From assembly GCA_965202585.1 (NCBI GenBank), contig OZ241833.1:47616001-47680000 (forward strand): a stretch of 64,000 bases of DNA, in the 5' to 3' direction. The notes under the pieces were generated by a model, which saw nothing but the letters and a program-made list of their open reading frames with translations, did not search any database and had not been told where the DNA came from. Shown piece by piece: positions 36,867 through 62,506 of the stretch (within the stretch, counting starts at the first letter, position 1; every line of letters starts with the position of its first letter). The translations under genes were made by a program, and so were the position numbers. This DNA comes from Thalia democratica (lineage: Eukaryota).

Positions 36867-39800
36867 AGTTAACTGTACTCAATAAAATTGTATTTGAGTG
36901 ATAAACTTTAAACTTGAGTGTTTTATAAGAAACTTGTTCAAACGTCGTAAATTTAATTTTTTGAGAAAATACGTCGTAAAGTCAAGGAACGTGATTAGAT
37001 TTACGATTTTGAGATTAAACAAGTTTTATTTGCATTGTCTTTACATTATAAGGTTTACGACTTGTTTTATTGGCGTATTTTCGCTTGTACAGACTTGGCA
37101 AATAGTAATCTCGCGTGTAAGCTTTCTTGGAAGTTTTTTATTTGTTTGCACTGAGATTTTAACTTTTAAAGTTTGAATTTGTTGTTTATTGTTACAATTA
37201 AATGTCTCCAGTTTTCCTAAATCAATAACCAGAATGCCAACAAGCAACTTTGATTAAAACTTTGATTAAACTCTTTTGTTTAGAAGTGTGTTTCTCATGA
37301 TAATGATACAATTATATGACGAGTAATTGTTATTTTCATAAACTTTTTCTTGAAAAATTGCTTTTCTTGTTAACAAAAAATTATCAAATTTTCTGAATTC
37401 TTCAAATTATCATAATGCTTGTAATTTTTTATTCCTTTCTTAAGGCTCTTTATGCCTTTTATCAGTTTTGGTAGATGTGTTTAGTCGTCTTTGAAAACAG
37501 TATACAAGGATAATCTATAGTTTGTTGACGTTTTAAAACTTAAACAGTCGCATTAAAATGTTATGTTTAGTATTTTAAATTTATTTTAAAAATATCACCT
37601 TTTATATGACAACTGTAAACGTTTTAGTTATGTTTTAGCCTAAAGTTGTATAACAAAATTAGTATGTACCATATACTTCTATCAATTCTAGTATACAATT
37701 TAATTTTTAAATCGATTAGCACAAAAACGTTATATAAAAACTACACAAAAAAATGTTCGATGCGTTACAGTTTCGAATTATAAAAGGTTTGTTAAATTAA
37801 AAGTACTTAAAAACATAAATTTAAGTAGTTATTTTTCATTTATCAGTTTCTGTAGTTACAAATTTCAATGCCCATTAAGTGTTTATACGTCACATCTGAA
37901 CAATGTACCAAATGTGACGTCATAGTTGTTTAAAAAATAATTTGACCTGTAATAAATTAAGGCACGAGTTTCGCATCTACATCAAAATTTTGAATGAGAA
38001 ATCAGTTTAAACCTTTATAAAAGTACTGTGCAAACTTATGAATTTATCTTTAAAGTTTTCTAAAAAGTTGATTAACTTTTTTAAAATTTATTTAAAGGCT
38101 TTGAAGTTAATTTATAGATAATTTCAAATAAGAACTTTAAAAGTTTAGCAAGTTACAATAATATTACACCAGGTGTTGAAAGTTAAATATAACAACTGAA
38201 ACTGTACATACAGTTAAAGACAACCTGTTTGATTAGTGTATTTATTGCAATAAACAATTTAAATTAATAAAGCTCATTAGTCTAAACGAAATAGTTATTC
38301 AAAACTTATGTTATTTTAACATAAACTCTCTACGTATCTATTTATTAATACTAACGGTCATTGATAATTGACTTGATTTTTTTTGTAAGCTTATCACTTA
38401 CATACGAACTTCAAAAACGTTTGTATAGTATTTATAATCGATTATACTTTTAATAAATTTGTCCTACAAGCTGAGTTATATAATTTTTGACCGATTATAA
38501 AATCAAAGTTTAGGTAAAAAACCGTGTGTTTTTTTTAATGAGAATAAAATAAGTATGCAGTATCTAAATAAGTTTTAAAACGAAAAACCACATCTATAAA
38601 TTTATATCGACACAATTTACTTAACACTTGAAAAGTTTATGTGCACATGCGAAACAGTTAATACATATTTTACTTTGACGCTTTAAGCTTGATTTATTTC
38701 CAAATTACAATTAGGTGTTTGTATGTATTTGTATATAGCTTAACTTGACATTTATTACTAGAATAATTGACTACATATACAAAAACAAACTTAACGCCTT
38801 TGTTTATTTGTTGAGAACAAATATTTTTTAAAAAACTAAATGTTATTTCAAGTAGCTTTTTATAACTTAAGTCCTAAATGAGTTCTAACTAAAAGGTTTA
38901 TTTAAAAACTTTTGTTTAGCTTTTTACTGCTAAAAAAATTTTTAAGTTACAAAACAATTTTTTCATTAGTTTGCACAAGTTTTCTATTTTATAAGTTCTA
39001 AAGCTAAAAAATATATTTTCTTTTTAATAAAGCTAATAATGAACCATATTAACAAGAATATTAAATTTTAATGTCATGGCAAAACTATGAAAGTTTAGTT
39101 CGTTGTGAGGCCAGTTTAAACATTATACAAATATTTTTATGATATTGTCAACTTAAAACAGCAGCTATTAGTTTTTTTCTTCTTTATGCAAAGATGAAAA
39201 AAGTTATTAGCGCAACAGATTATTTATGTTAAAGATAAAATAATTATTTTCAATGACATGTAATTAAGTAATTCAGTTTGAAGAAACAGTTTTTACGTAC
39301 CTGCTAATAAGAAACATTGTTTTTGACCAACATAAAACCTTCTATATGACTATGAGGTGTTTAAGCTGTAGAAGTAGATTTGTATCAATCTACTTAAGAT
39401 AAATATGAAATGGCTAATTTAGTTATTATTTTATAATAAAGTTTACAGTTTATAGCAAATAATAAATTTCATAAATAATAAACGTTTAAGATTCTCTAAG
39501 TAACTACTTCCTATAAAGTTTAAATTAACTACAAAACTTTTTTTAATGTTACAAGAGAATTAAATTTCGTATTAGTATATATTATACTATTAAAAAAGTT
39601 ACATTATATAAAACTTATGAAGCTAAAAAATAAGTTTTTTAAACCATGAAAATATTCAAAACCTAAGTTAAATTAAAATTGGCAATTCTATGATCAGTAT
39701 TTTTTAATTGATTTAAGTGTTATTACGTTTATTTTGAGTTATATTTAAAAACAAAATTATTTTAAAATGTTTTAAATTTAAGATTTTTTTTTAAATATTA

Positions 39801-39893
39801 TTATTTAATGCTTTTATTTTATTAGCTTAAAAAAAATTTTTCAAATTTGATTTAAATATTACAGATTATTATACCTTTTCTTATTGTTTATTT

Positions 39894-40254
39894 AAAGACA
39901 TTCTTTTTGACGGGTCAAATATGCACGAAGACGCTTGTGCATGAAACACGAAGGGTTGTTTTTGCACGAGAGTAAAAAAAAAAGGTTAATAAAAAAAAAA
40001 GAAAGTATAAAACCAAAAGACAATCAAAATAAAATCGAGTGATTATTTATGCTAATGTTATTTTATAGCAATTTTTTATTTTTTCTTATTTACTATCACT
40101 GTGACCCGTAACCCTTAGAAGAAATAGAAAATTTCTAAAAAATAAAAACATTTACCGACCAAGGCTTAGAGGTAACAATGATAGACAAAAAGATAAAATA
40201 CCTTGAAAAACTTAGAAATCAAAAAGATTTTTAAACCCGTGCAAAAATGTCTTT
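39894..40254. mobile_element. MITE-like element with imperfect ~25-nt TIRs
   Basis: aaagacattctttttgacgggtcaa at the left versus ttaaacccgtgcaaaaatgtcttt at the right; internal inverted ggtaacagtgatag-type motifs. Confidence 0.5.
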
Positions 40255-40884
40255 GTGCACATTAGAAACCTACCCCTTTTTGACACATTCTACTAACTAA
40301 ATTTAGATCTTAATGCTAGTTTTTGCTATAATGAATTGATTTTCGTTAGCTTAAAAACCTTTGTACTTGTTGTATTTTTATATTTTAGACAAGTAGTATT
40401 ATTTCTAAAAATTTTTCAGAACAAAATAGAATTCAGATAGTTTCTTTTACTTTAAAATAAAACTTAACCTGATTTACTACTAATAACTTTAAAGTTTAAA
40501 CACGTTATACTAACATTGTTACAGAAGATGTTTTTCTACGAAAAAAATTAGATGTAACATTAAGTACTACCTCTAAGTTAAAGTTTACTGTTAAAATTGC
40601 CTTAATGGTAAGAAACAAGTATTTAAACTAGATAATACTAAACAATTGTAGAGGTTTTAGTCAAATTTATTAAATTCTACGATCAGTAAAATTCGTATGC
40701 GTTACAAGCCGAAAGCAATATCTAAAAATATCCAATAATTAAGTACAATTTTGATATCTGGTTCTGAGAAAATATAAGTCTAGGTGTAGTATAAAGAAGA
40801 TCAGTAAGAAATACTTAATAAATCCCTTAAGAATCAGCATTTCATTATTGTACTTTTTTCTCGTATATCAGGAGTCCTCATCAA

Positions 40885-41583
40885 CTATTTTCTATCGGAA
40901 CCAGCTTTCGGTTCACCCGAATCTTTATCTGGATACTTCAAGGCAGATTGTCTCGATGCGTTAGAATGTACTGGCGGAGAAAGTATCGCAGGTAATGCGG
41001 CTGGATCAGCTCCCAAAGGCAGATACAACTGTAAACAATTTGCTCCGGTCAGCATACGGATATCAAGTACTGGATTAGGCAAAGTCGCTCCCATAAAGGT
41101 AAATGTGATTCTAGCGTAAAATATCCATTCTTCCTGCACTCTTTGGTAGAATAAATACAGAACTGTTATTGGGTTTAATAACCTTATTTCTATTCTCCAC
41201 CAGGGAACAATAGTCAACTGAATTAATGGAATCAACAGGTCGTTGTTAAAGCCTATTACAGGCGTCAGCACCAAAGCACCGGGTCCCGGAACGTTCACAA
41301 TAGTCGTGACGTGCACTACTCTCCCGAACGGAGACAAGTCCAAGTAGTCGGTCGTAATTTGATTAGAGTTAGATCTGAAGCCAATTGCAGGTGCTTTTAC
41401 GACAAAAAACACTTCTCTTCTGATTAACATCCATGCATTATGAGTCCTTAGGTAAAGTGACACTTCAACTATTGTTAGAGTGCCTAAAGTTAGTAGTCTC
41501 AGTATTAGGAGTCTACCATCTATACGAATGTAAAATCTTCGAATGTTGTTGCTGTTCTTGATCTGTTGCTGATCGTTTGCCAT
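40885..41583 (-). CDS. Unrecognised single-coding-exon protein, family member A (232 aa)
   Basis: Long ORF in AT-rich DNA, AAAATGG start context, clear paralogy to the ORFs at 45794, 51451 and 56790 (PAIG…TDYLxLSP…NVPGP.AL). Confidence 0.85.
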   Translation of the reverse strand: MANDQQQIKNSNNIRRFYIRIDGRLLILRLLTLGTLTIVEVSLYLRTHNAWMLIRREVFFVVKAPAIGFRSNSNQITTDYLDLSPFGRVVHVTTIVNVPGPGALVLTPVIGFNNDLLIPLIQLTIVPWWRIEIRLLNPITVLYLFYQRVQEEWIFYARITFTFMGATLPNPVLDIRMLTGANCLQLYLPLGADPAALPAILSPPVHSNASRQSALKYPDKDSGEPKAGSDRK

Positions 41584-43507
41584 TTTGTTTTCTGTTTTTA
41601 AGTTATAGTTACTTAAATTAACAATATAAACAGAAGAACAGTTTTTTAAACAAACTTACTATTTTAAATAAACTTTTTATGATAATGAATTTTAGTTATA
41701 CATCCTCACAAATATTTTACTTTTAAAATGTATGAAATTTGTTTGTTTAAACATAATATAAATAGATTTTTTTTCCTTGATAACTATAGAAATTTGCTTG
41801 TACATAAATACTTTCAAAAAATTTATTTGATAAATACTAATATTATCTTACAAAAATCCGTTTTATTAGACTATACAGTTTAACAAATGCATTTTTTTAT
41901 ATGCTAAAACTTATCTCTGTTTTTACATACCAGCAATGAAGAAATTTTCATGAGTATTTTAAATAAATATTTTATTTGAAAGAAATTTTACAAACTATTA
42001 TAACATTGACAGCATAAAACAAGTGAAAGTTTAATTTAAATTAATACTGTCACAAGTATTTTTAAAATAATTAGAAAAACATGTAATATATATTATATGT
42101 AACAATAATTTATACAATCGTATAAAAAAAATTAAAAATGCATGTGTTGACATTCAGGTATACATAACAAATGTTAAGAATCTAATACTTACTTGTTAAG
42201 TTTAAATTTTATGATAATATCTTCATTTGACGAAATTGATATCTTACAAAATGCATCTATATTTATACTAAAGAAACTATAAATATACTCAGAGTTGTTA
42301 TCAATGATTTTATAATGTTTACAATTATACAAAAAAAGCCATTATTTTTTTTTTATTTCGTATGTAGCTTCAAACCAAGTTCATAGAAATTGAAAAAACT
42401 CGTAAAGAATTGAAATTAATAAAATAAAAAATTCTTTAAAAAAAAGTACTTACCAGTTCATGATTGTATTTAATACTTATAGTTAATTTCATGAGTCAAA
42501 AGTGTTACAATAAAGAATGAAAACTAAACCTAAATAACATTTCAGTAATAGTGTATAGTAAAAATTTTTGAGCGAATATTTTCGAATTGATTTCAAATAA
42601 GAATCAATTACATTTTAGTATGAGTAAAAGTTTAAAATATGTTGCTTTTAGAATTTAATAATGTATTTTTTAGGTTAAACTTGTACTAGTTTAATAAATA
42701 TATAAGTAAAATTTTACGTTTTACTTTAAGGTAAATTTATTAAAATGTTTTTAAAAACCAAGTATCTTTAAAACTCTTTACGTACAAAAATGTGTTTTAT
42801 TTATTTTTAATAAATATATTTAAGAGGTAAAAAACTTAGTAGTAGCTTAAACTGATATTAATTTATTATTCTTAACTTGACTGATTTATTTTAAATAAAA
42901 CTTGTGCTTTATTGGTAAATTGTCAATTATATTTATTTAAAAAGAAAAAAATTGTAAGTTTTTCTGTAATAATTGTATTTAGTTATTGGAAGAAAGCAAT
43001 TTTCTACAGGTTTAATACAGTTTAACATGCTTTGGTATTTAAACAATTCTCGTAGAAGCTATGAACGAATCTTTATAATTTTAGCATAAAAGTTACAGTT
43101 AAAACTTTATAAAGTTTAGTTAAATGTTGTTTTACGTTATTAATACTTTTCTAGGCAAATTTGCTACAATTTTAAAGTCTTTTTAGCTACTTTTAATATT
43201 TATACACGTAAAGTTTAGTACTAGGTAAAAATTTTACTACTAAAAGTTGTTTCAGCATAAATAAATGTTACTTTTTTATTTACGAAAAGTAATTGTTATG
43301 TTTTAACTATATTGAAATAAAATTGTTTTTTTATCCTACACTATTCAATTTAAGCTAATTGATTTGTTTAAAACGATATGTGTTTCGTTTTAAGTTAGCA
43401 AATTTTAAACAAAGTAACAAAAACATCTATTTTTTCACTCTAGTTATTTAGATAATGTAGATAACAACTCAAAATTTTTCGATATTTATTAATAGGTAAT
43501 AAACTAA

Positions 43508-43567
43508 ACCACACGACCATTAACAACAATCCACGAAAATTCGTCCTAACTAGGACTCAACAGGCAG
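43508..43567 (+). mobile_element. Decayed left arm of the 61374 MITE family
   Basis: accacacgaccattaacaacaatcc…taggactcaacaggcag matches the MITE arm. Confidence 0.65.
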
Positions 43568-44511
43568 AAAAAATATTTTAGTTTTGTTGACGACCGCCAA
43601 TCTGTTTCTACTAGTTTATATTGGTAAAAAACGACATAACTTATGTAAACTAAAGTTAATTTAAATGCTTAACAATTTAAATGACAAAGAACAATTTTAA
43701 AACGCGAATAGTTCACATTGCTTTAAGTTTTACGACTGAAACAAAACTTTGAAAGTTTACTTTATAAAAATACATAAAGTGAATAAAAAGTTGTGTTGTT
43801 CTTGGTTTGCTTAACCAATTTTATTTTTAAATAAAAAAACAATAAATCAATTAATTATTAAGAGTTATTATGTCTACATATACAAACATCAAACATACTA
43901 AAAGTAACATAGTTTATAATGAAACAGTATAATCTAAACTACTAAACTTATAAAACTTGTGCGTGGATTTTAAATAAAAACTCTTTATAATCGATGAAGA
44001 TAAATAACTTAATACTTTTTTATATTTTTAAAAATTTATCGAGTAAGTTTCTTTGATTTAAAAATTCAAAAACGTAAACGTTTTGAAAAACTTAAAATAC
44101 TAAGACGAAATAAAAACCTTTATTCGTCGTTTTAAAGCTGATGAAATAAAACCAAACTTTCTTTAAGCATTATTATAGCTAAAACTTAGTAAACAGTTAA
44201 AGTACAGCTTTATACATTTGTATTAATAAGGAATAACAACTTATAACAAATACTTATTTTAACAATAATAGGTATCAATGATAAACTAGACAAGTTTGTT
44301 ATTATCACCTTAATAACATAATTATTTACGATTTTTTAAGTTACAACACTAGCTATAAGCCATAGATAAAAAGTTTAGAAAATATCGAGATACCAAGTAA
44401 ACACATTAGCTAGAAAACAAATAGTAAGGCACATTTATGAACATAAACTTACTCTATTTTAATTTACACTTAAAAAGTCTATGTATACAGCTAGATCACT
44501 TAATTTTAAGT

Positions 44512-44710
44512 ATGATTTACTACAATAATTCAATTAAGTGTTTATACATGTTTGTACATGGCTTAAATTGACATTTATTACTAGAATAATTGACTAATTA
44601 TACTATAGTCAACTTAAACACTGTTCTTTATTTGTTTTGAACATATTCTATAAAAAACTGAACGTTTTAATTTTTAATTTGCCCTGTATAATTTTGGGCT
44701 CTTTATGAAT
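44512..44710. repeat. Conserved ~200-bp 3'-flank block of the tandem array; other copies at ~38693-38880, ~49773-49935 and ~53598-53796
   Basis: Shared core gcttaa(c/a)ttgacatttattactagaataattgacta…tttatttgtt..gaaca at a similar position downstream of each unit. Confidence 0.8.
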
Positions 44711-45793
44711 GATGTTTAAAGAGTTTTCAAACTTTTTGGCTATCTCGGGTTTCTTTACATGAATTTGCTAATAACTTTAGATTTTTAACCTCTTAAAACG
44801 AACAAATTGTTACCTTGCTAATGAAGCTTGTCAATAAAACTTAGGTTAAATATAAATAGACAAAACAACATAAGTTTAAATTGTTGTGCGAACTTATAAT
44901 TTTGTAGATTTTTTGAAGGTTTTCAACATTTACTAGCAAACAATTATGCTCAAATAGTTTTATACATTTTCAGTAGTATTTTTTATTCTTATGTGTAAAA
45001 TGATTTTAATTAAAAGATTGTAATTATTTTCTATACACAATAAAGTTTCTTTTAAAGTTTTAATACTAATAAGTTTAACAACTAACCTATTTCGTTAAAA
45101 AAAATTTAATGCTTGCTCTTCCAATAATAATTATTCAAAAACAAAGTAATTAGAATGCATAAAGACTTTTCAACAATGTTTTAATTTGAGAATATACTAT
45201 ATTTCAACACCGGTTCATTTCATTTTTTATTCCAATATTTTAGATTAATACGGGCTTGTAAAAGCGAAAATAATTATAGCGCCTTATGTTTAGCAATAGT
45301 TTTCTAACTACAACAAATTTATCTAAAACTTTCTAAACTTTTAAGATTTTAAATAAAAGTAAATGTTAATATTATGAACATCAGGGTTTATACCTCGTTT
45401 AAACAAACTAGTTTTAGTTTATTTTAATTTATTATCTTATGTGTTTATTATCGATTGGTTACAGATATGTAATTTTGCTGTGAAACACAACCTATAACTA
45501 CTTCTTTGCTAAAACAGACTGTAAATAGCAATATACAAAAGTATTATTAAACTAAGTAAATATTTTATATCAAAATTTCTCCAGTTTTAATTCTTTTTTA
45601 TTGTTTGCGAAAAGCATTAAATTTAAAATCATACATAAGCTGAAAATCATCAAAAAGAAATTAAGTTTCATAAAACTAGTTGAGAAATATATATGCCTAA
45701 AAGTAATAAAAGAAAAAATTAAGTATGAAATATCTTATCAACCACTAAAAAATGAATAATTTTCAACTTCGAAAATTTCTTTTTTCTTACAAA

Positions 45794-46585
45794 TCAGAAA
45801 TCCTCTCCAACATCATCTTCATCTTCTCTTTTAGAGTCTTCTTCAGGTTCGCTCGAATCTTTGTCTTCAGCTCGAGCTGAATACGTCAATGCAGGATACG
45901 TCATAGTTTGATACGTCATCACAGGATACGTCAATGCAGGTACGTTGTTGCTAATAGCAGGAACACTCACAATAAAGATACACAATAAAAGTAGGAGTAT
46001 CATCAGAGCCGCTCCTTTATACGTGCCGGTCAGTGACCACATGCCACGGATTCTCTGGTAAAGTGAACCAACAACTGGGATACCATTAACTAACCATACT
46101 CTCAGAAACCAGTTATTACCTAAAATAACGTTCCATTGACCGTTACTTAGAGAAACAATTACGAACAGGTTGCTGTGGAGTTCAGTGGGTGTTGTTACGG
46201 GCACAGGCATTAAAGCATCAGGTCCTGGAACGTTCATAACAGTCGTGACGTCATGTCCTCTTCTGTATGGAGAAAAGCCCAAGTAGTCTGTCATATTGAG
46301 AACCAAGTTAGGTCTGTACTCAAGTGCAGGTAAACTTGGAAACATTATTACTGTTCTAGTTTGGGGCAATACGTTTTGAGGTTGCAACTGGTATATATAA
46401 CGAACTCTAACTGCTGTTCGTCTTCCTACTGTTAGAAGTTTTAGGTGTATGTGAGTTCTGTCGATAATAATCGTCATTAAGTTTTCTAAGACGTCGCTGT
46501 ATGGAGGTTGACCGGTAGCCTGAACTGTTACGAGTACACCAGGCGTTGTTGGATTACCGTAGCTCACTTTGATTTGTACCTCCAT
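45794..46585 (-). CDS. Unrecognised single-coding-exon protein, family member B (263 aa), with a hydrophobic segment and acidic tail
   Basis: Long ORF; paralogous motifs (KVSYGN, MFPSLPA, TDYLGFSPYRR). Confidence 0.88.
   Translation of the reverse strand: MEVQIKVSYGNPTTPGVLVTVQATGQPPYSDVLENLMTIIIDRTHIHLKLLTVGRRTAVRVRYIYQLQPQNVLPQTRTVIMFPSLPALEYRPNLVLNMTDYLGFSPYRRGHDVTTVMNVPGPDALMPVPVTTPTELHSNLFVIVSLSNGQWNVILGNNWFLRVWLVNGIPVVGSLYQRIRGMWSLTGTYKGAALMILLLLLCIFIVSVPAISNNVPALTYPVMTYQTMTYPALTYSARAEDKDSSEPEEDSKREDEDDVGEDF
45884..45943 (-). repeat. 15-bp coding minisatellite, four units (PALTY-PVMTY-QTMTY-PALTY) in family member B
   Basis: atacgtca recurs with a 15-nt period. Confidence 0.85.
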
Positions 46586-47119
46586 TTTCTGTGGAAGAAA
46601 AATATATTAAACATATTTACTTATTAAAAAAAGTTTTTTAAAGTTATTTATTTGGTTGAATCACTTAACAAAAAATATGGTTGTAAGTTTAAAACAGTTC
46701 AGTTTTAGATTAAAATATTTTTGTTAAGTTAGTTGCTTTAGTATTGCATCAATAAAATATCTAAAACAAGTTCACTTCAATAACTAAACTTTAAACAGAT
46801 TTGTATGATTAACTAACTTACAAAAAAACCTTACTACTAGACCTAAGTTTTTCTTTTATTGTTAAGGACTTTTAAATCAATGTTTATATATTATCAATGA
46901 AAAAATTTAAATGAGATGCTTGCATCATAAAAAATCTGGAAATTTTTAGACATTATTTCAATTTTACAGTACATAGCTATAACTAAAAATCTTATAATTT
47001 ATACTTTTACATTTGTCTCTACAAGTAAAATAACTTTAAAAAGTATACTATAAAAATTCTGCTTTGTTATGAAACAGAATTATGGAGCATAATACTAACT
47101 TGTTTAATTTAGTTTCTTA

Positions 47120-47360
47120 TTTTATCTTCAACTTTTCGTGTAAAATTTTGAAATCCTACTAAAGTTCATTGTAATAATCTTACATTTATACAGCAACAAC
47201 TATCAATATACTGTAACTTGTAATCAGTTAATTTACAATGATTAAATAACAGTTCACATTATACAAAAATGTATTTTTATTTCTTTCGTTTGTAGTTTTA
47301 AAGCAATTTTCTAGTTTTAAAAACTCATAAACCATAAGTAGTTTTTTTTGAAAAGTACTA
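47120..47360. repeat. Conserved ~240-bp 5'-flank block of the tandem array; other copies at ~52893-53140, ~54010-54250 and, in part, ~57978-58085
   Basis: Shared cttcaac.tt..gtgtaaaattttg…tatcaat.tactc…ttgtaat…tttgcagttt.aaagcaa. Confidence 0.75.
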
Positions 47361-48382
47361 AAATTAATGTGCCTAACATTTTATGATCGTATTTCAATAC
47401 TTATAGCTTTTTATATTATACGTTTTACTAAGAACTAAACTTTATTAATATTATAGCAATATTGCATAGTAAAATATTTTTTAAGTGATTTTTTTAATAT
47501 TTCCATACCATTACATACTTGCACGAGGTAAAGTTTTAAAGTAGAACTTTAAGTCTTTAAAAAAATATAAATAAAGTGTTTAATTTTTAAACTGGTATAC
47601 AAACGTAGTATACGTATTATTTTACCTCAAGTTTGAAACAAAAAAAATTAAGTTTTATTTAGCAACACAAACTTTATATAAACAAGTTTGTTTTAGAGTT
47701 TTAGACTATGGTTTTATCAAACAAATAAAAAAAACCTACTAGTTGCATTAATTTAAACTGGTTACTAAATAACATAAAAAGGTCAATTTTTAATCCCCTA
47801 TCATTGACATAGCTATTTTTTTTTATAAAACTTGTGCTTTACTCGTAAACTAGTCAAATATATTTACATTAGTAAGAAAAAAATTGAAGTTTTATTTTGT
47901 TAAAGAATAAAATCAGTTTTTGACAAGCTCAATTTCAGTACGTTTGTTTTGATATTTCAAATGAACGATTAAGCTACTTTGTTTAATAGTTTTTTTTGAT
48001 AAAACTGCTAATTTTGAACAGTTTAGCTTGTTAAGTGCATATTTACGTTATAAATAGTATTCACTTGGCAACCGTGCTATGACTTCAAAGTAATTTTAGT
48101 AATTTTCCTATTCAAAAACGTAAAATATTATAAATGAATGAAAATCATTTAGTTTCTAAAAGAAGGTTTTTGCTTGTCTAAAATCAAGTTTTGTTTTAAT
48201 AGATAAAATTTGCTTAATGTGAATTTATATCTTAAGTTTAGAACTTGAATTAACTGACTAATAAACTTTTTTTTTTATTTGCGCATTTTTAATATTTTAT
48301 TTTCAAAACCCTGGTAAAATACTTGTATACTAAGGAAAACAACTTACAGGTTTTTCATAATGATCGTTAAGCAAGAAAATGA

Positions 48383-48457
48383 ACCGCACGACCATTAACA
48401 ACAGTCCACGCGACATTCTACGACCTACTTTCGTTCTCATTTGGACTCATCAGGCAG
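48383..48457 (+). mobile_element. Decayed left arm of the 61374 MITE family
   Basis: accgcacgaccattaacaacagtcc…ctacgacctactttcgttc…ggactcatcaggcag matches the MITE arm. Confidence 0.7.
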
Positions 48458-51450
48458 AAAAAAGTCCTTATTTTGTGAAAAATAGACGAACTATTATAAT
48501 TAATTCCAGTTGGTATAAACATAAACCAACGGTAAAACTATTATAAATTAATGATAGTTTAAATGTTTTTCAATTTAAGTGACAAATAGAAAAATTATAT
48601 AAAGGAAAAGAATTACTTTACTTGAAGCTTTAGGAATTAAGAAAACTTTTTACAAGTTTTAAAAGATATAAACGTTTTTTATTAATGTTTGCTTGACAAA
48701 ATAAGTGTACTAAACAAAAACAAGCAAACATTAACACTTATTATGTCTGTTTGTGCTAATATTGTTTGTATATACATAACTTAATAAAGCTAACTAAACT
48801 ATTAAAAATATTGTAATAATTGACAACAGAACAGCTTTATATAAGAATACGACTAATTTACAACAAATTTTACCTTAAGGTTTAAGTGGTATAATTCGTG
48901 CGTGGTTGATAAACAGAAAAGTTTTCTAATCGATTAAAATAACTTTAGCCTTAATATTTTCGATTTTGTTTGTTTAGTACACACTTGTATAACAATCTAA
49001 AATATTTTTTAAACACTTTTAATACTTTTAAATGCACGACAATGCTCTTTTTATAATTGCAAAATCTAAAATGACAATTTTGAAAAACTCTTACATTTTC
49101 TATTCATTCATTGTAAATTTATATTGTAGTACCATAGACCTATATTAAACTAATGTAGGTCCACTTACTTTAAAGTAAGTAAGTTGTATGACTAGTTTTA
49201 ATATAAAACTTATCTAATCTGTAAATCGTTTATAGCTAAAACCTTTTTATGAAAAACCAAAACTAATAGTACTTAATAAACACACCTTACAAAGTATGTA
49301 AATACTTTCTAGTCTAAAGTACTTGAAAAAAACACATTGCGTACTTACTTTAGGAATAAAATTACTAGTTTAACTGTAAAACCAGCTAATAAAGATTCTA
49401 TGACAATAAAATTTTTCATTAACAATAAACTAGTATTATGTTGTGGATGTCAAATCTCACCGTAGGACCTAAGTTTGTGGCTTCATAACTGTTCAAAGTC
49501 CGTAACTATCATATTTAACAATACTGGAAAAATCAAAAAAATATTTTTATTGAACAAGTAAAAACGTTTGATGTTTTTAAAGTTTCAAATGTTTTCATTT
49601 AAATGTTAAGAGAAGTTTTATTTTTTACTAAAGATACCAAGATCATTATAGTTTGGTTTGTAACATCTGTGAATCCAAGGTTTTTGATTTACTTGAGACT
49701 TTAAAATTGTACGTACATAACACAAAATGCGCTTAAAACATATTTTACTTTGTCACTTTAGGTAGATTTATTATGTTATTTCGATTATTTTCTTGTACAT
49801 ATTTGTACATAGCTTAACTTGAAATTTGTTACTAGAATAATTTAACATTTGTATAAAAACAAACTAAAACTTTGTTCTTTATCTGAAAGAACTGATACTT
49901 TAGAAAACCAAATGTTTTGTTTCAATTAACTTTTTTATAACTAGTATTTAAATCAGTACAATTTAAATGGCTTGCTAACGATAATGGTAATAAAGTCTTG
50001 GTTAATAAGGTAGTTAAAATGTTTTTTTTTAATTCCAAAGAATGATAAAGCCTTTGAAATTTTTTAAAACAAAAAAAAACATATTGTCTACGAAGCCCGG
50101 CAATATATATTAAAAACAAGTATCAAAATACAGAACAGAGAACAACAACACATGTTCAAATCGTTGGATGACCTAATAAAAACTGTTTTTAAACTTTGCA
50201 TAATTAAAGAGCAGTTGTACTATAATCTTGTTAGTAGAATTGAAATGTATTTTACTTATTTATATATACACAATTTAATCGTTTTTAATAATATTTTATG
50301 GTCTTTTTATTGTATTATACTAATTTTTTTTTAAATCTTAATTCCAAGATTTGAATATGATGACAAAACATTTAAAATGCCTTAATTTTACTTTTATTTA
50401 CCATAAACTTTTACTTTGATCGTTAATTTTTTGAGATTAGACTCTGTTTAAAAAGTTTAATTATAGTCTATAAAAGCATATTCAACTGTTAACAACTTAT
50501 TACTTATATACTTTGTTTTTAAACATTACAAAGCATAAAACAAAAGTTTTCATTTTACTAATATTAAACAACTAAACCAGAATCAAAATATAGTTAATGT
50601 TAATCATAATCTTTAAATTAAATTTTTTCAAAATAAAATAATATATTAAGCAGACATTTACACAAAAACATGATTAATTGATCAAGATTACTAGATGTCA
50701 AACTGACAATCAGAACAAGTAACTAATATTAGCAATATAAACCAATGTAGTAAATCTATTAAAAAATTGTTAAAACTAACAATTATGTTTTAATCTCTCT
50801 CGATCTTGATTAATAATTTCAAGTTTTTTATATTAAGTTGCTAAATGATTTATAAATATTTAGTACTACATTCTATTTAAGAAAAAAAAAGTTTTATCGT
50901 ACTTAAAACAACACGCTATATATTTTTATTTCGCTTTTAAGCTAGATTTCACACGGTTTTGTAGTACATAAATGGAACTTCAAGCATGTAAACATCAATG
51001 GTTTGTTCTACTAATAACCTACTTTTAAACTAAATAGATTTTTTTTAACTTAATATTATTTACTATCCTAAGGTTAAGGTATAATTACAGGAGCTTGTTA
51101 AAAATATCAAATACGATTCCTATTGCGCAGCAAAATTAAAATTAGTTAGGTACTAGTTTAAATGATCTTTATTTGATAATATACAACTTAAATTGAAAAT
51201 AAGTATTGACTTTACAACAAAATTCAAGAGTTTTAGTTCAACTTTATTTAATATCACAACAAGTATAATTGAAGTCATAATAAAAATGAAAAAACATTTA
51301 TAAAAATCACTAAACTAAAACAATTTTTAAAGAGCAAGTTGTGAATTCCTAGGTGTGAAAAAAAAAAACCGTAAAAATACTTTTTTTTATCAGTTACTTA
51401 GAAACTGGCAATCAATATTGACCTGCGAGACTCTGGTAATGCACGATCAC

Positions 51451-52344
51451 TTAATAGTCTGGAACAACAACATTTCCATCATCGTCATCTTCAGCTTCAT
51501 TTTCGGACTCATCATCACTTGTCACAACGATAGTTCTACACGTCTCTTCGTCATCATCTTGATTTTGATACGTCAACGCAGGTACATTTCTAATAGCAGG
51601 TACACCCATAAAATTCAGGAAAGGAATTAAACTAGCCAAAGTCGTTTCTGTGAATGTTCCAATTAGTACCCACGAGTTCGGTGTTCTCTTGTAAACTGAA
51701 ACTCCAACCGGAATACTTTCTTCATACCAAACACTTAACCATATGTCGTACGCCACAACAACGAACCACTGACTGTTGATGAATGAAGCTATCGTCAGCA
51801 ACGAGTCGCTGTTTGATCTTAGTAGTGGGAACATCACTAACGCACTTGGTCTCGCATGAGTAACGTTTATAACATTCGAGTCGTTCTCTTCTCTTCTGTA
51901 TGGAGACAATCCCATATAATCTGCAAAGTTGATGACGAAGTTGTTAGGTCTACGACCAACTGCAGGTAAATTTGGAAACATTATTTCTGTTCTAATTTGC
52001 AAAACTACACGGGGTCGCCTTTGATAAACATAACGAACTATAGCGACTTTTCGAGTGCTAACTGTTATACGTCTTACCCATATGTTAGAGTTTAATAAAC
52101 TATCAGGGTAAGTTATCATAATTGTATCCTCGCACTGGAAGCAAATGCATGGTATCTTGTTAACTACCGCTATGACTAAACCCATCATCCCATCCTGATC
52201 TTTATCGAGGTACATTGTGAGTCCATTTGTAAACTTGATGTGACGTGTTGGTACGTTCTGATATGCCCTGATTACACCCAGCGTCCCATCGAGCGTTATT
52301 TGATTGCCATAGCTCACTTTAACACGTATGAATTCATCTGCCAT
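51451..52344 (-). CDS. Unrecognised single-coding-exon protein, family member C (297 aa), with an acidic tail
   Basis: Long ORF; paralogous motifs (KVSYGN, MFPNLPA, DYMGLSPYRR, VPALTY). Confidence 0.88.
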   Translation of the reverse strand: MADEFIRVKVSYGNQITLDGTLGVIRAYQNVPTRHIKFTNGLTMYLDKDQDGMMGLVIAVVNKIPCICFQCEDTIMITYPDSLLNSNIWVRRITVSTRKVAIVRYVYQRRPRVVLQIRTEIMFPNLPAVGRRPNNFVINFADYMGLSPYRREENDSNVINVTHARPSALVMFPLLRSNSDSLLTIASFINSQWFVVVAYDIWLSVWYEESIPVGVSVYKRTPNSWVLIGTFTETTLASLIPFLNFMGVPAIRNVPALTYQNQDDDEETCRTIVVTSDDESENEAEDDDDGNVVVPDY

Positions 52345-53210
52345 TTTTCTTTCCTGTTAACAAAGTTTACTTTTAATGACAATTGAAAGAAAAAAATAAA
52401 GCGAGCTCAGATGACGAAAAAAATATTTCAAAGTTTTTGATTTTGGTTGGACCACAGTTAGATATTATTAAATATTTATAACTTTAGTTGCTTTAAGCTG
52501 CTAAACAAAATCAATTAGTTGTTATTGCTTTAGGTCCTAGTACTTGACTAAATAAAATTTTGAACGATTTATCTACAGTACCTAATAAAAATTGTTTCTA
52601 CTAGATTTCTTATGTTTTTATTTAAATTTAAAAAATGTGGAAACTAGTAAAAGTTTTAATACTATAAATAACTCTAATTGAGATGCTTACGTCTGAAAAT
52701 GTTTTACTAAAATATTAATAAGCATTTTTTTTATATTAAACCAGTAGTAAACATCAAGCTCATGTTTCAAGCCTTGAAAGTTATCGTTGAAGTTATAAAC
52801 TAGTAAAGGACATAATACTCTATCAATTTTCTATCAATTAAAAAACAAATTCTAAAATTCATAACTTACTTGTAAAATACAAACTTGTAACAATATCTTC
52901 AACCTTCAGTGTAAAATTTTGCAATCCTACTAATTGCATTAAAGTAATGTTATATTTATACTACAGTAAATATCAATCTACTCAAAATTGTAATCAATTA
53001 TTTTACTTTAATTAAATAACTACTTTCAATTATACAAAAAAGTCTTTTTAGTTTTTTTCCTTTGCAGTTTCAAAGCAAGTTTTTAAATGTTTAAACAGTT
53101 CATAAACTATAATAATTGTTTTTAGTGAAAAGAAACAAAAATAGTGAACTTATAAGTTTATGATGGTGTTTTAACATTCATGTTAATTTATACTATAGTG
53201 TTAAAACAGG

Positions 53211-53523
53211 AACGGGTCAAAAAAGCACTAAGACATAATTACACGAGATTACTAAATTGCACGTAAAAAATTTTGTACGGAAGGTCTTTTCTGTACGAGC
53301 GTAAAATTATATGCGTATATAAAACTGAAAAACAAATAAATAAAAATATAAAAAAGAAAAAAAAAATCTGACCGAGAGTATGGGTTAGGGGTAACAGTGA
53401 TAGAAAAAATAATAACAAAATCACTAATATAACAATTTAAAAAACAAATAACAATATATAAAACTTAAATGATTTAAAAAAAACACTACCGGCCGAGGGT
53501 AAAGGTTTGAGGTAACAGTGATA
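53211..53523. mobile_element. Decayed element related to 39894-40254
   Basis: Begins acgggtcaaa and carries gg(t)aacagtgata twice (~53390 and ~53512), as in the 39.9-kb element. Confidence 0.4.
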
Positions 53524-56500
53524 ATATGTTAATCTATCTAAGTGTAAATTAAAATAGAGTATGTAAATACCTCACTCACTCAATTGTCACTTTACGTATG
53601 ATTTAATACGATATTTCAATTAAATGTTTATACATATTTGTACATAAATTAAATTGGGATTTATTAACCGAATAACTGACTAATTATACTAAAGTCTCTT
53701 AAACGCTGTTCTTTATTTGTTTTGAACAAATACTTTAAAAAACGTAATGTTTTTATTTTCAATTCGCCCTATATAATTTTGGGTTCTTTTATGAATCTAA
53801 ATGAGATGCTAACATAATGGTATTTTACTGAACATTAATAAACATCAATTTTGATTTTATGGTACAAAGCAAGTAAACATTAAGGTTGCGTGTAAAACTT
53901 TTACATTTTTTGAAAATACAAGAATAACAAAATACATTATTATTATGCTATGTTTTAATAGAAACTTTAAAGTTATTTGCTTACATGTTTAATACACAAT
54001 TGTGGCAATAACTTCAACTTTTGGTGTAAAATTTTGCAATTGTACTGAAGCGCATAATAACAATGTTATATTTATACTACAGCAATTATCAATATACTCA
54101 AAATTGTAATAATTTATTGTACAATAATTAACGACTAATTTCAATTATACATAACAGGCTTTTAGTACTTTTTAATTTGCAGTTTTAAAGCAAGATTCTA
54201 GATGTTAAAAAAGTTCATAAATCATAATACTTGATTTTAGTGAAAAGAAGTAAAAAAAGTTTATCTAAAACTTTATGATAGTGTTTTAGTACTCATATTT
54301 ACTTATATTATCTGTGTTAAAACATGTACTGCACTAAAATCTATACTAACATATTTTTACTAACATATTTATAAGAGTAAAAGATTTGAGTAGAATTTCA
54401 AGTTTTTTATAACTTTAAATTCAAATAAAGTGTTTTATTGTTTAAACTGGTGAAAATTTATCTATTTTTTAGCCTTCAGTTTATTATCTTCTTTTATTTA
54501 AAGTAAATTTTAGCCATACGATTTTTGTGTATACAAGTTTGTTTTATATAATAGATTTATCAAACAAATAAAAAATCTACTAGCTGCATCAACTTATAGA
54601 TAACCAAGGGAAACAATTTAAAAAGCTTATTAGTTACTTCACTTTAAATTTAAGAATTTCATTCACTTTTTGCAAGTTTTCAAAGTTTTAAAAAGTTTGT
54701 GTTCTTTTATGTTTGCTTGGCCGAGTTAACAGAATAAATAGAACAAAGCAAAGATTAATACCCGTTATATATATAAATTTCTACAAATAAAGAACTATAA
54801 TTTGCATATAAGAAACTTAGTAAAGCAAATTAAACTTTTTTAAAAATCAACATTGTTGATTAGTTTAATCTAAGATTACAACTAATTTACTTATTGAGGT
54901 TAAACTGGTAAAATTTGTGGGTTATCTATAAACTAAAAGCTTTACAACCTAGTAAAAAATCTTTATTTTTAATATTTTTTCATGTTAAAAATGTTATGTT
55001 GTATAACTGTGCAAATTTAAGCATTGTTATTTACTGGTCGAGTACAAGTACTTTAGAGTTTAAACATTTAAAGTTGTTTTTATAACTTTTGGTTTTTCTG
55101 AAATGCTATTGAAAAAATCGATTAAGATGGTATTTACTACTCATAGGTACTTATGTTATATTTGTTAAATCAGCTACGATTAAAAATTTATTTATAATAG
55201 TATTATCGCAGTTCTGTTCAGTAAAAGATACTTAAGTGAATGTTCTCTAATTGTTTTCATATCAGCTATATATTTGCATGAGTAAAATTTTTAGAGTAAA
55301 GTTTTCAGTTATTTTGCTTTTAAGATATATTTTGAAAGTTTTCATTGTTAAGTTGATACAAATTCAATACACGTATTATTTTACCAAAAAGTTAGGTTTA
55401 AGTTTATTTTTTACGGAATTATTAATAACTCATCAATAACTTAGCTCTTTTTAGCATTAATTAAACTATTTATTATTTTCGGTAGCCTATAGTATTTATG
55501 TTTAAAATAATAAATTCTCTAAGTTTATTTTGTAAAACTTTTGTGGTGTTGATAAAAGTTCATTAGTTTGGTTTCATTATACGTACTTTAGTTTTTACAA
55601 TCACAATAATATTACTTCTATAAATTCAAAATCAAAACAATAAATATAAGGATTTTTTATAACGAATATTTTCTTCGTCGATTGTGCTATAACAGGTTTC
55701 GCTAAGGTTTTAAAGTGTTTAGTTAACTCTAGAATTAATTAAGTAAAACTTAATACTAATAGAGAATACACTTTATCAAATGATATTGTTTTAGTTAAAA
55801 GAGACAAAATTAACGTATCTACAACATTGTTTTATTAAAATAATTTGTATAATCGTGAAGTTTTTATATTGTATAACTATTCGAACGGTTTGAACTACTT
55901 AAAAATAAAATTATTTGGAAAAATGAGTGTTTAAGTATTTTATCAGAGTAAGAAATATAAGTGTAAGTAAAAATAAAATCAAAGTTTTGTTATTTTTACT
56001 TATGCTAAAGATTTATAAGTACAATGTTTTTTAAAATAAGTTCTAAAAGAAGTTTTTGAGCTTTAAAACTACCTTAATATAAATTTGATTAAACTTCATT
56101 TTCACATAAAGCCTTGATATAATAAGGCAATAAATATTATTTAAATAAAAATAAGTGTCCTCAAACTTGTTGTAAGTTTTTTTAACATTTCTAGCATTTA
56201 TAAAGAATAATTGTTATTATTGCAGTTTCATTTTTTAAATTTAAGCATATTGTTATATAAATGTTAAAAAAATTAATTTAAATAATCAAACTTCTAAACC
56301 AGGTGATATTTTCAACTAAAAGTAAATATATACATTTAAAATAGTAAATGCATTATTCGTTTATATCACTACCTCGTTTTCTATTAAACTAGTTTCCTTA
56401 TGCTAATTCAATTTGAGTTCTAATCTTTTAGATTGAGATGAAATTGTACAGCTTGTCATTCTTCAGCGGAAAAACCGTTTAATTACTACTCTGCTTCAAA

Positions 56501-56699
56501 AGCGTTATGGTATTATAGAACTAAATCAATAAATCAGTTTTTTTTTTTAACAAAAAATTTCACGCTTTAATTTTATTTTATTGTTTGCGACAATAAGTAA
56601 AAGTCAAATCATTCATAATCTGGAAAAAACATGATATAACAAAAATAAATTAGAAATAATACTACTTTGCAAGAAAGATATCTGCTTAATAAGAAGACT

Positions 56700-57125
56700 A
56701 GCAAGAAATACCTGATCTGAAAAAATCAAAATGTTTTTGTTCTTCTTCTTGTACGATCCTAATGACATCACGAAAGCACCCTGGAACTTTCATATTTGTC
56801 GTGACGCTCCCTTCGGAATGGAGACATTCTTTCTTCGAAAAGGAGACAAACCCAAGTAGTCTGTCGCATTGAAATCCAATCTGTCAAATATGTTGCCGAT
56901 TGCGGGCAAACTTGGAACGTTAAATATTTCTCTTCTGATAAACATCCATGCGTTAAAAGCTGCAAGGTAAAATGACGCTACAACCATTTTTAGTGCGCCT
57001 ATTGTTAGAGGTCTCAGTATAACGAGTCTGTCCCCACTTTCAAAAAATATAAGTCCATCTTCTATCGTAACGTAAACTGTTAGAACGGGTTTGATCGCTA
57101 CAATTTGTCTCTGTTTGCTTGCCAT
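56700..57125 (-). pseudogene. Family member D, truncated at 111 aa by a frameshift (ATG 57125, TGA 56792-56790)
   Basis: Similar to member A up to DYLGLSPFRR. A ~20-nt internal duplication (56806-56847) shifts the frame; homologous VTTNMKVP/GAFVM continues out of frame. Confidence 0.75.
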
Positions 57126-59353
57126 TTTCTTGTCTGTAAAAAAAATAAATATCAACTTAATAATTAATTAAGACTACTTCTGTTTTTTTTCATTGAGATT
57201 TTAATATTTAAATCAGCGATACTTAACTTGGTGTACCCTTGTTTCTAGGGGTACAAGCTGTGCAAATTATGTTTATTTGTTGGGTTTTTATTTTATAAGT
57301 TTGTGTTTTTAAAAGTTTTATTCTTCTTTTAGTTAAAATAAACTATTTATATTTTAATGCTTTTTTTTAGTATGAGACTTAAATTTCAAAAATTGTAGTT
57401 CCTTTCTTCAAAATAAAGCACTGTTTAACTAAATATTATGAGTAAATTTAATAATTGCCTTCCAAAAAGGAGTAAAACATGAAAGAAGGTTATGAACCGC
57501 TAGATAAACACACATGTAAAAATATTGCTTTAAAGTTCAAAATATTTTGCCTATTTCCAAAATTAATAAATTTTACTTTTTTTAAGCTGAAACAAAGTAA
57601 AATTTGAGAATTTACTTTTATATTTTTAGTAAGTATACTAGCTTTAGCAACTTTTCAAATACTTAATAGTCTAAAACAAATATAGTACTTATATTAAACT
57701 CTTTCCACTAGATTTTATATAGTTATACTTATTCTTTAAACAATGTGTAAAAACAACCATTAAAAGTTTAAGTAATATGTGTCTAAACTTTTGTATTATT
57801 CTTATATTTTGCTTGCATTTGTTTTTCAATTAAAATTTGAATAATTAAGACTAAATAAAATATTTTTATTGTTTTTTAATTAAGATACTAAAATTTGGAT
57901 GATATTAAAACTCTGCTGTAATAATAAGCACACATAACAAATTTTAAGCTTACTTTTTTAGTTTGATTTTGGTCAAAATCTTTAACTTTTGGTGTAATCT
58001 TCTACATAATCTTACTAAAGTGCAGTAAAGAGTGCAAAATATATACTGAAACAGAAATTAATTTATTCAAAATTGTAATCAATAATTGAAAAAAAAAACA
58101 TTTGCTTATTAGTTATGAAATATAAAGCTTATGATTTATGAAGCTTAAAATTTCTAAAGCAGTTGATATATAAATATTTAAATTATAAAGTTTTTAGTAA
58201 AGTTGTAATGATAAATAAGACAGTTATAATAAAAAAACTAAAATTGCGTTTTAAACTTTAGTAATTTATTTAGAATTGAAAAATAAATGCTTCTAAGTTA
58301 ATATAATGTATCTTGTTTTGGAACTTAGCCATAATTTTTACTGAAAAAAATCTATTTATAAGTTTTTTTTAAATTATAGCAACCACTGCATTTCTGCATT
58401 TACAAAAACAATAATGTAAAGTTTCGATTTTTGTTTGTAAAAACTGAAATAAACTTTTATAAAAATTGTGAAGTGTAGTAGTATAACTGTTGCCTATTAT
58501 TCTACCCTTAATTTTTTTCGACAAATTTATAAACAAAAAGCCTTGTTTAGCACTGTAGACTACACTTTAGAACTTTTATAAATAAACAGTATCATTAAGC
58601 ATAGTATTAAAAAACAATCTTTTTTTTTAAATCAAATTTTATTGCTTTATGTCAAGTTTATTACATTTTGACTGTATAGTGTGCAGTTACGAATATCTTT
58701 TATCATTTGAATTTAGTTTAATGAAAACAAAATATGATAGAATTTTAAGAATAAGTGTTTTTTTACTTAGAAGCCTAAAAAAACGAAATTTTAAACAGAG
58801 TTTTGGTTGATTTTATACCAGTTTAACTTTTCACTTTAAGTATTCAAACGATGTTTATCATCTTGAACTAAGTTTTTGTTACAATGTATGTTTCTTAATG
58901 GTTGTTTTATATAAACTAGTCTGAATAATAAAAACACTGTACCTAAAAAAAACAGTTTAATTTTTTAACTCAAGTACAAATATATAAAAAATAGTTGCGC
59001 AAGTTTTTTAGAATATAATGAATCTAAAGTTATTTTATCAAAATAAGCTACATTTAGAAATTTTTTAATTACAAATTTTAAATTCATAGTTTGCTAACAC
59101 TTGAATTTTAATTAACTACAATGTTTATTACTTTCTATGCATTGTATAAAACTAAAAGGTTTTTTAAGTAAAAAAGCTAAAAATTTAAGCTTTATTGTTT
59201 AACATAGCTTTGTGATTTCTTGTAGTTTTATGATAATACGAACTTGATAATAATTTTAAAATATGTGTTTAAACATTGATAGTTAATCGTTATTTTTTAT
59301 TTAAAGAAATTTCAAAGCTGTCGTTGTTGTCGACTGCAGTTCTAAGGTCGCTT

Positions 59354-61173: not shown

Positions 61174-61373
61174 CTGAAATAAAATAATAAATATTTATTT
61201 TATTTTATTAACTTTCATGTTTTTGCTATTAGTATAAATTCTTAAGGGTAAAAATAATATTTTGTTGGAACAGATTCAAATAAATATTGTCAAATAAAAA
61301 AGTACTACATCTTTTGTTGTTTAATTGCTACTTTGCTTACTTATTTTAAATGCATAAAAAAATAAAAAACTTT

Positions 61374-61586
61374 ACCACACGACCGTCAACAACAGTATCC
61401 GAGACAACCTACGACCGGTTTCGTACTTATTAGGACCCATCACGCAGGCATATTAACGAGAGACCCTTATCCCGTTTGCTTAGATCTCAACAGCGGTTTC
61501 TCGTGACTATGCCTGCCTGATAAGTCCTAATAAGTACGAAACCGGTCGTAGGTTGTCTCGGATGCTGTTGTTGATGGTCGTATGGT
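61374..61586. mobile_element. 213-bp foldback MITE with long terminal inverted repeats
   Basis: The outer 63 nt of each arm are inverted repeats with 3 mismatches; weaker pairing continues ~30 nt further around a ~25-nt spacer. No coding capacity. Confidence 0.85.
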
Positions 61587-61740
61587 GATGTTTAATATTA
61601 ATGGCAAAACATTTCAACTTTGTTGATGATGGTCTAAATATATACTGGTTATTCAAATTATTAATAAACAGGCAACTAATCAGAAACAGTTACTTACAAT
61701 TTACTTGTATATGTTAAGTAAGTAGTTTAATTAAACTAAC

Positions 61741-61911: not shown

Positions 61912-62506
61912 CTGGAAAGTATTTAAGTGATATAATTTGAAAATAAATACATAAATTAAGTAATACAGTTCAACATTTGTTTGTTCTAAAAAAATTTTAT
62001 AAGCTCAGTTTTCTGCTTTTGGGTCGTATGTATATCATTAAAAGTATAAAACTATGGATTAATGCTAACAGTACTACAAAAGTATTTTAGTTATAAAACG
62101 AACATAGTTAATCTTAACTTTTTTTTAAATTAATTTACCCAATCAATTTTGGGGACATTAAAAAGCTTTAGTTTAACCAATGTGCATTTTTGATAAGTAC
62201 TTACATAAAACTACATTTAGGTGTGGTTATATAATACCACTCTTGTTCACAAAAGATACTTAAGCAGATAAAACTACACATATTTTAAAAATAGGATTTA
62301 AACTTACATAAAACAATAGTACTTGTAGATAAATTTTACTAATTTATTTGAAAAAGATAGTTATGTGTTATATAAGGTGAAACTTAAACAAAATTTTTAA
62401 TTAAAACATAAAAACTTTAAAAAACAATTTTAAAAACCAAAAGTTATCTAACTTGCAAATTTCTTTAAATTAACCAAGCTATGCTAAAAGTTTAAGTAAC
62501 AGTAAT

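Follow-up and report, generated by a model that had tools for sequence, protein, structure and literature searches.

Tandemly arrayed orphan families are common in invertebrate genomes. As is generally known, such families have homologues in close relatives only, include truncated or dead copies, evolve fast yet keep their open reading frames (ORFs), and are driven by TATA promoters. We describe a locus that resembles them in each of these respects, located in a 64,000-nucleotide stretch of Thalia democratica contig OZ241833.1 (positions 47,616,001 to 47,680,000 of the forward strand, hereafter the window). Three intact genes (A, B and C), one truncated copy (D) and one unit without coding sequence (CDS; unit X) form a tandem array on the minus strand and belong to a protein family with no recognised domain. 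The best-supported reading is that this is a taxon-restricted (orphan) family of the host, a marine and probably planktonic metazoan, which was amplified and diversified by birth-and-death evolution, and we consider this reading probable, although well short of certain. The family is new, but it is of a common kind, namely a lineage-specific tandem expansion.

Other described systems resemble the array in part. MSP and VAP proteins provide an analogy only: they are small all-beta proteins without a signal peptide, as is predicted here. MSP genes are multi-copy and clustered in nematodes, and VAP members carry a C-terminal membrane anchor. The VAP anchor resembles the predicted one of the B-type proteins described below, which is followed by an acidic tail of ~50 residues. 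The family matched neither the Pfam MSP model nor a PDB sequence and is not a member of this group. HSP20/alpha-crystallin proteins, again as an analogy only, are cytosolic, beta-rich and of similar size, and their genes often stand in tandem clusters, with coding exons free of introns and TATA promoters that are inducible, but the family gives no HSP20 match in Pfam and is not a member here either. The aerolysin-like pore-formers without a signal peptide, such as the hydralysins of Hydra, are known as cysteine-poor, beta-rich proteins of ~25-30 kDa with lineage-restricted paralogues; the likeness is one of description, and neither a sequence match nor, with low-confidence models, a fold match to that family was found. 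Cnidarian antimicrobial peptide families are short and secreted with a signal peptide, whereas the proteins here have 230-300 residues and no signal peptide was recognised. Processed retrogenes and endogenous viral elements share with the array an uninterrupted coding exon beside an intron-rich neighbour. Unlike them, each unit of the array has its own conserved promoter block and a predicted intron in the 5' untranslated region (5'UTR), the duplication took place at the DNA level, and no parent or viral homologue was found.

The array, as shown by self-BLAST and repeat families, is listed below with its parts.

38615..58200, minus strand: tandem array of five units, in the transcription order D, X, C, B, A.
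40885-41583, minus strand: gene A, complete single-exon CDS, 232 residues; AATAAA 214 nt past the stop codon.
41592..42192, minus strand: intron of 601 nt predicted in the 5'UTR of A, with a GTAAGT donor and with a CAG acceptor that lies 8 nt upstream of the ATG.
42150..42420, minus strand: predicted promoter block and non-coding exon 1 of A; TATA box at 42267-42262.
45794-46585, minus strand: gene B, complete single-exon CDS, 263 residues; AATAAA 192 nt past the stop codon.
46589..47099, minus strand: intron of 511 nt predicted in the 5'UTR of B, with a GTTAGT donor and with a CAG acceptor that lies 3 nt upstream of the ATG.
47075..47345, minus strand: predicted promoter block and non-coding exon 1 of B; TATA box at 47190-47185.
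51451-52344, minus strand: gene C, complete single-exon CDS, 297 residues; AATAAA 203 nt past the stop codon.
52354..52869, minus strand: predicted 5'UTR intron of C, 516 nt, from sequence conservation.
52845..53115, minus strand: predicted promoter block and non-coding exon 1 of C; TATA box at 52960-52955.
53529..54324, minus strand: unit X, a promoter block followed directly by a boundary block, without CDS; TATA at 54076-54071, donor at 53984.
56762..57125, minus strand: copy D, truncated, A subtype (ORF 56790-57155, ATG at 57125); AATAAA 208 nt past the stop codon.
57134..57953, minus strand: predicted 5'UTR intron of D, 820 nt, from sequence conservation.
57930..58200, minus strand: predicted promoter block and non-coding exon 1 of D; TATATA variant at 58045-58040.
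38615-38867, 44449-44710, 49687-49942 and 53529-53796, no strand assigned: AT-rich non-coding block of ~260 nt, 73-80% identical among the four copies.

All copies are arranged head-to-tail. A preliminary description of this DNA had placed the four ORFs at these positions, and they were recovered there; within 39-59 kb, no other ORF of at least 100 residues exists. Unit X and the probable 5'UTR intron had been missed. The units are ~5 kb long, and their non-coding blocks repeat at a spacing of 3.8-5.8 kb in a self-comparison of the window, in agreement with the duplicated units proposed earlier. Because these non-coding blocks recur collinearly, whole units, not the ORFs alone, were copied at the DNA level. 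The blocks of the array, coding and non-coding, are absent from the rest of the window, and a tblastn search across all 64 kb found no further family copy beyond A-D. The ~260-nt AT-rich block forms the low-coordinate edge of a unit (the copy at 38615-38867 being the edge of unit A) and is more conserved than the family CDS; it is a candidate boundary element, enhancer or repeat remnant. A whole-window Rfam scan detected no family, and a scan for bacterial-type promoters and terminators showed no enrichment, the models being bacterial and the host a eukaryote.

The open frames stand out from their surroundings. At the regional base frequencies (A.37, T.38, G.12, C.13), a stop codon is expected in a random frame about once in 11 codons, and the probability of 232-297 open codons at this composition is 7e-10 to 2e-12. 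The guanine-plus-cytosine (GC) content is 40-42% in the CDS versus 22-23% in the spacers.

Two of the five units show decay. Copy D contains the N-terminal module of the family only: its frame is disrupted once, with a premature stop, and the C-terminal module was lost in one deletion, so that a stretch homologous to the 3' flank of B begins shortly after its ORF. The preliminary description called D a pseudogene. The truncation and the disrupted frame hold, but the dead status is uncertain: D retains its promoter block, acceptor and AATAAA, and related species have short forms of the gene, so D may be a short form and not a dead gene. Unit X belongs to a 1,115-bp duplication of the region upstream of C, in which 52810-53208 matches 53927-54324 at 78% over 402 nt. 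Its boundary block (53529-53796) matches the copy at 44449-44710 at 80%, and tblastn found no family CDS in the unit.

The promoter, exon 1, intron and poly(A) models were derived from sequence conservation. A block of ~270 nt, located 0.5-0.9 kb upstream of each ATG, carries an invariant GTATAAAT, for which D has the variant GTATATAT. About 75-92 nt beyond this TATA element sits AAG/GTAAGT (GTTAGT in B), with the slash marking the predicted splice position, and a pyrimidine run ending in CAG is found 3-11 nt before every ATG, also in the relatives. Exon 1 is non-coding, with no ORF running on into the CDS, and the start codons and their context are conserved. The TATA-proximal part of the promoter block is conserved in contigs of related species; for the A intron, the donor and acceptor show conservation both between the paralogues and with relative L002. 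The conserved TATA block, exon 1 donor and CAG acceptor in each unit therefore imply a 5'UTR intron and copying at the DNA level. At the other end of the gene, AATAAA lies 192-214 nt after the stop codon in A, B, C and D. The promoter blocks are still 75-78% identical between units, whereas most intron and spacer DNA can no longer be aligned, a difference that speaks for constraint on the promoters and hence for their use. The family had been described as intronless; this stands for the single coding exon, located beside a many-exon neighbour gene, but not for the transcript, as a 5'UTR intron is predicted in each unit.

Upstream of the TATA box, at a distance of ~25-50 nt, a footprint of the form TGATTACAA...ATTGATA is kept among the paralogues and in related species (approximate positions 42300-42330, 47215-47250, 52985-53020 and 54100-54135). 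It may be a transcription-factor site.

An alignment of the four translations shows the shared motifs PA[ILV], DY[LM]x[LF]SP[FY]xR and NV..P.AL. The amino acid identity is 47% for A/D, 41% for B/C, 33% for A/B and 27% for A/C by alignment and codon comparison, and both the motifs and the subtypes A/D and B/C agree with the preliminary description. The conserved part is an N-terminal module of ~110-125 residues, which ends in a PAI...DYLGLSPYRR...NVPG core; downstream of it, the architecture varies. The proteins are 25-33 kDa in size and contain 0-4 cysteines each, and the isoelectric point is 9.8 (basic) for A versus 4.8-5.6 for B and C (4.8 for C). No signal-peptide-like hydrophobic stretch is present in the first 30 residues of A-D, as judged by hydropathy only (highest 9-residue value 0.9-1.9), consistent with the earlier claim that a signal peptide is lacking.

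The C-terminal parts differ between the subtypes. B contains a transmembrane-like segment at residues 193-211 (19-residue hydropathy 3.03), followed by an acidic tail. A hydrophobic segment of 2.64 is found at the same alignment position in the relative P0002, with lower values in P0005 and C, and it is absent in the A subtype: the product of gene A has no strongly hydrophobic C-terminal segment, and neither A nor its relatives have an anchor segment. B, P0002 and P0005 share the order of a W-rich segment, the hydrophobic segment, PAI/PALTY-like motifs and a strongly acidic tail. The product of C has an additional N-terminal insert and a long acidic tail. Some relatives consist of the N-terminal module and an acidic tail only, or of the module with hydrophobic tails, which may be partly read-through into T-rich DNA. 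The B subtype is predicted to be a single-pass membrane protein, and the basic residues preceding the hydrophobic segment of B suggest that its N-terminal module faces the cytosol. Two internal duplications were considered and rejected, one between the N-terminal and C-terminal modules (hhalign probability below 1%) and the other for the N-terminal insert of C.

AlphaFold models calculated from 4 and 17 sequences are all-beta, with a mean predicted local distance difference test score (pLDDT) of 39 and 41, respectively; only residues ~15-60 of A reach pLDDT 60-76. A Foldseek search against PDB and BFVD with these low-confidence models found nothing at E <= 0.001, with template modelling scores (TM-scores) of ~0.2, values that carry no information for models of this quality.

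Homologues of the family are detectable only in closely related genomes. An exhaustive hidden Markov model (HMM) search of 1.84 billion representative proteins, run with no length limit so that longer, shorter and fused kin were covered, returned 11 matches, and 10 of these are true relatives; the other, P0011 (E = 3.7e-4), is a simple-repeat protein and was rejected as spurious. Word-indexed searches with the family profile and with the N-terminal module alone raise the total to ~20 clusters at 90% identity. All relatives are unnamed, have no Pfam domains, and come from AT-rich contigs of 0.5-2.7 kb in ENA or Logan marine metagenome assemblies, several of them from Tara Oceans (project PRJEB4352). 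These contigs align to the window at 70-86% nucleotide identity across CDS, promoter block, intron and 3' flank, and therefore derive from related species with the same gene structure. On contig L004, a short-form gene is flanked by two promoter blocks 1.4 kb apart, so the tandem arrangement is shared. Further short forms are P0004/P0014 (143 residues, identical in three samples) and P0021, which consists of the N-terminal module and an acidic tail.

Searches of reference libraries were negative. Scanning 15 members against Pfam with E values up to 1 allowed yielded no family, consistent with the earlier statement that no domain could be recognised. PHROGs gave nothing below E = 0.1 and NCBIfam no match. 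The PDB sequences, queried with single proteins, with the profile of the whole family and with each of the two modules separately, yielded chance matches only (E >= 0.8). Pattern-plus-tblastn scans of IMG/VR and the JGI metagenomes found no relative, and a literature search on the family motifs and the sample accessions found nothing relevant. The match to a conserved family or a transposon ORF that would speak against the preliminary description was thus looked for in Pfam, NCBIfam and the PDB sequences and was not found.

Two observations concern the contigs of the relatives themselves. At L011:228-781, the gene is split into two adjacent ORFs of 87 and 94 residues, which is either a broken copy or an assembly error in a low-coverage contig. 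In addition, the gene caller of the source database reports a 62-residue ORF on the minus strand, upstream of and divergent from the A-like gene (L002:1238-1426, L007:1564-1752 and L008:1104-1292); it falls within the predicted 5'UTR intron and is probably an artefact.

The ratio of nonsynonymous (dN) to synonymous (dS) substitution rates was estimated by the Nei-Gojobori method with bootstrap ranges. Between A and its A-like orthologue in L002/L007/L008, dN is 0.27 and dS 0.59, giving a dN/dS of 0.45 (0.32-0.66). The ratio is 0.56 for B versus C (0.37-0.82) and 0.54 for A versus D. The preliminary description had proposed dN/dS as a test for positive selection; overall, the ratio is 0.45-0.65, and it is about 1 for the N-terminal part of B. 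The family is under constraint but evolves fast, and for part of B either drift or diversification is possible. The paralogues are old, with dS of ~1 outside the conserved core. As a check for gene conversion, dS within the core was compared and is lower (A-B 0.36, B-C 0.48, versus ~1.0 elsewhere), over a segment of just ~41 codons.

A hybrid gene occurs in a related species (P0001/P0013, loci L001 and L009). Its first 469 nt match B and the B intron at 86%, while positions 345-1300 of L009 match A and at least 480 nt of the 3' flank of A at 83%, and the overlap between the B and A parts lies within the conserved core. Its A-type half has a dN/dS of 0.51 against A. The B-type half, compared as the N-terminal part of B versus L009, has a dN/dS of 1.08 (0.63-2.55). 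Since B is located directly upstream of A in the window, a single unequal crossing-over between neighbouring units would yield such a B/A hybrid. Together with the truncated copy, the CDS-less unit and the observed dN/dS range, the hybrid supports the fast-diverging birth-and-death family proposed in the preliminary description.

These observations show that tandem duplication of ~5-kb units at the DNA level amplified the family, and that birth and death left three intact genes, one truncated copy and one unit stripped of its CDS, with the frames kept open across species under relaxed purifying selection. Each unit would be its own transcription unit, predicted to comprise a TATA promoter, a non-coding exon 1, a 5'UTR intron of 0.5-0.8 kb, one coding exon and a 3'UTR of ~200 nt. 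More tentatively, the products may be non-secreted, cysteine-poor and beta-rich proteins, with a conserved N-terminal module and a changeable C-terminal part. The latter would consist of a W-rich beta segment and then a membrane span with an acidic tail (B type), or of no anchor (A type). With the N-terminal module facing the cytosol, the B type would be membrane-anchored and the A type soluble. TATA-driven, tandemly amplified, fast-evolving genes are mostly cell-type-specific or inducible, so restricted or induced expression is expected here.

Several points weigh against the orphan-family reading. The beta-rich assignment is weak, as models with a mean pLDDT of 39-41 are unreliable, and the lack of a signal peptide was judged by hydropathy only. 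The promoter, the intron, expression itself and function are inferred from sequence features only, and a direct biochemical activity cannot be named. The ratio of ~1 between the N-terminal part of B and L009 could reflect neutral drift in that part. The analysis covers 64 kb of the genome, and further copies or a parent gene may possibly lie elsewhere; a founder event predating the array is also possible. If the orphan-family reading is true, the array is a compact case of lineage-specific family growth and decay, with intact genes, a truncated copy and a promoter-only remnant within one 20-kb locus, and a crossover hybrid in a related species. The family could then serve as a marker for the host clade in plankton data and would be a candidate new fold. 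As it stands, it changes no general view and would be a fairly ordinary lineage-specific expansion.

A further-reaching version of the orphan-family reading is conceivable, although we regard it as doubtful. In this version, the N-terminal module would be a fold or family not seen before. It would be of recent origin within a single clade of marine zooplankton, where AT-rich DNA may have given rise to it de novo, and it would have taken on a diversifying, inducible role in defence or reproduction in which anchored and soluble paralogues cooperate.

We consider it unlikely that the family encodes toxins or other defence effectors which, like certain beta pore-forming toxins, are released although they have no signal peptide, and that its tandem diversification reflects an arms race. 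The predicted products would suit such a role, being cysteine-poor, beta-rich, 25-33 kDa in size and without a signal peptide, and so would TATA-type promoters and tandem, fast-evolving genes with a dN/dS of ~1 in part of B. However, no aerolysin, ETX/MTX2, actinoporin or other Pfam model matches at E up to 1, and there is no PDB sequence match and, with low-confidence models, no fold match. Moreover, dN/dS is clearly below 1 for most pairs, and the B type looks membrane-anchored, not released.

The preliminary description had called an intronless origin typical of immune or defence effectors, retrocopies, or domesticated viral or horizontally acquired genes. The step from intronless genes to a retrocopy, viral or horizontal origin is not supported, given the promoter and the 5'UTR intron predicted for each unit and the lack of any viral, transposon or bacterial relative in the libraries searched. 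Somewhat less likely still than toxin effectors is a founder that arose as the processed retrocopy of a gene with introns, with tandem duplication following later. The uninterrupted CDS beside a many-exon neighbour gene would be explained in this way, but genes with one coding exon of 0.7-0.9 kb are not out of the ordinary. The predicted 5'UTR intron is conserved in every unit, the DNA that follows copy A shows no remnant of a poly(A) tract, and neither an intron-bearing parent nor any relative beyond the close-relative contigs was found among the 1.84 billion proteins; by these three results, the signature of a retrocopy was not found.

It is improbable that a viral gene, for example one coding for a beta protein that is small and capsid-like, was domesticated after a single capture and then multiplied in the host. 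Such a gene would account for beta-rich proteins of capsid-like size with a single coding exon and no host homologues, and a founder event older than the array would be invisible from the window. Among the 1.84 billion representatives, however, only contigs of close relatives match, the searches of IMG/VR and PHROGs found no relative, and fold matches in BFVD have TM-scores of at most 0.21 (a weak point, given the poor model). No other virus-like gene lies nearby, and the promoter, the 5'UTR intron and the shared flanks are host-like. A horizontally acquired bacterial gene was also considered and is not supported, as there is no NCBIfam match and the sole match outside the family is the spurious P0011. 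With no homologue in any library searched, no signature of a virus or of a bacterial donor was found.

It is very improbable that the ORFs belong to transposable elements and that the array is a cluster of insertions. Several copies, one of them truncated, and spacers with fragments resembling miniature inverted-repeat transposable elements (MITEs) might be read in this way. However, the copies lie head-to-tail with unit-wide collinear blocks, as in segmental duplication, and their flanks are kept in the relatives; the family is also very small within a 15-billion-protein collection. No transposase, reverse transcriptase or integrase appears in Pfam, and no terminal inverted repeats or long terminal repeats surround the ORFs. 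The lack of enzyme domains and terminal repeats, together with the collinear flanks shared with relatives, means that no transposon signature was found.

Chance open frames or long-dead pseudogenes without a product are hardly credible: the gene models are known from sequence and the structure models are of low confidence, but open frames of this length have a probability of 1e-9 to 1e-12, several related genomes preserve them, at a dN/dS significantly below 1, the CDS and spacers contrast in GC content, and the start context, promoter and polyadenylation signals are conserved.

Outside the array, the many-exon neighbour gene occupies 4300-23500 on the minus strand, and its exons encode Thyroglobulin_1, MAM and CUB domains, which mark the host as a metazoan. 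The GC content rises to 55-63% in some of these exons, against 22-29% in the introns around them; the contrast is much sharper than that of the orphan family (40-42% in the CDS). A near-perfect palindrome at 61361-61599, with arms of 105 nt that are 88% complementary and a loop of 29 nt, looks like a MITE-type repeat. Fragments similar to its arms are found in the spacers of units A and B (48383-48457 and 43497-43528) and in the relative contig L007 (387-450). Close to the palindrome, at 62485-62636, a 76-nt unit is present in two tandem copies that are 75% identical.

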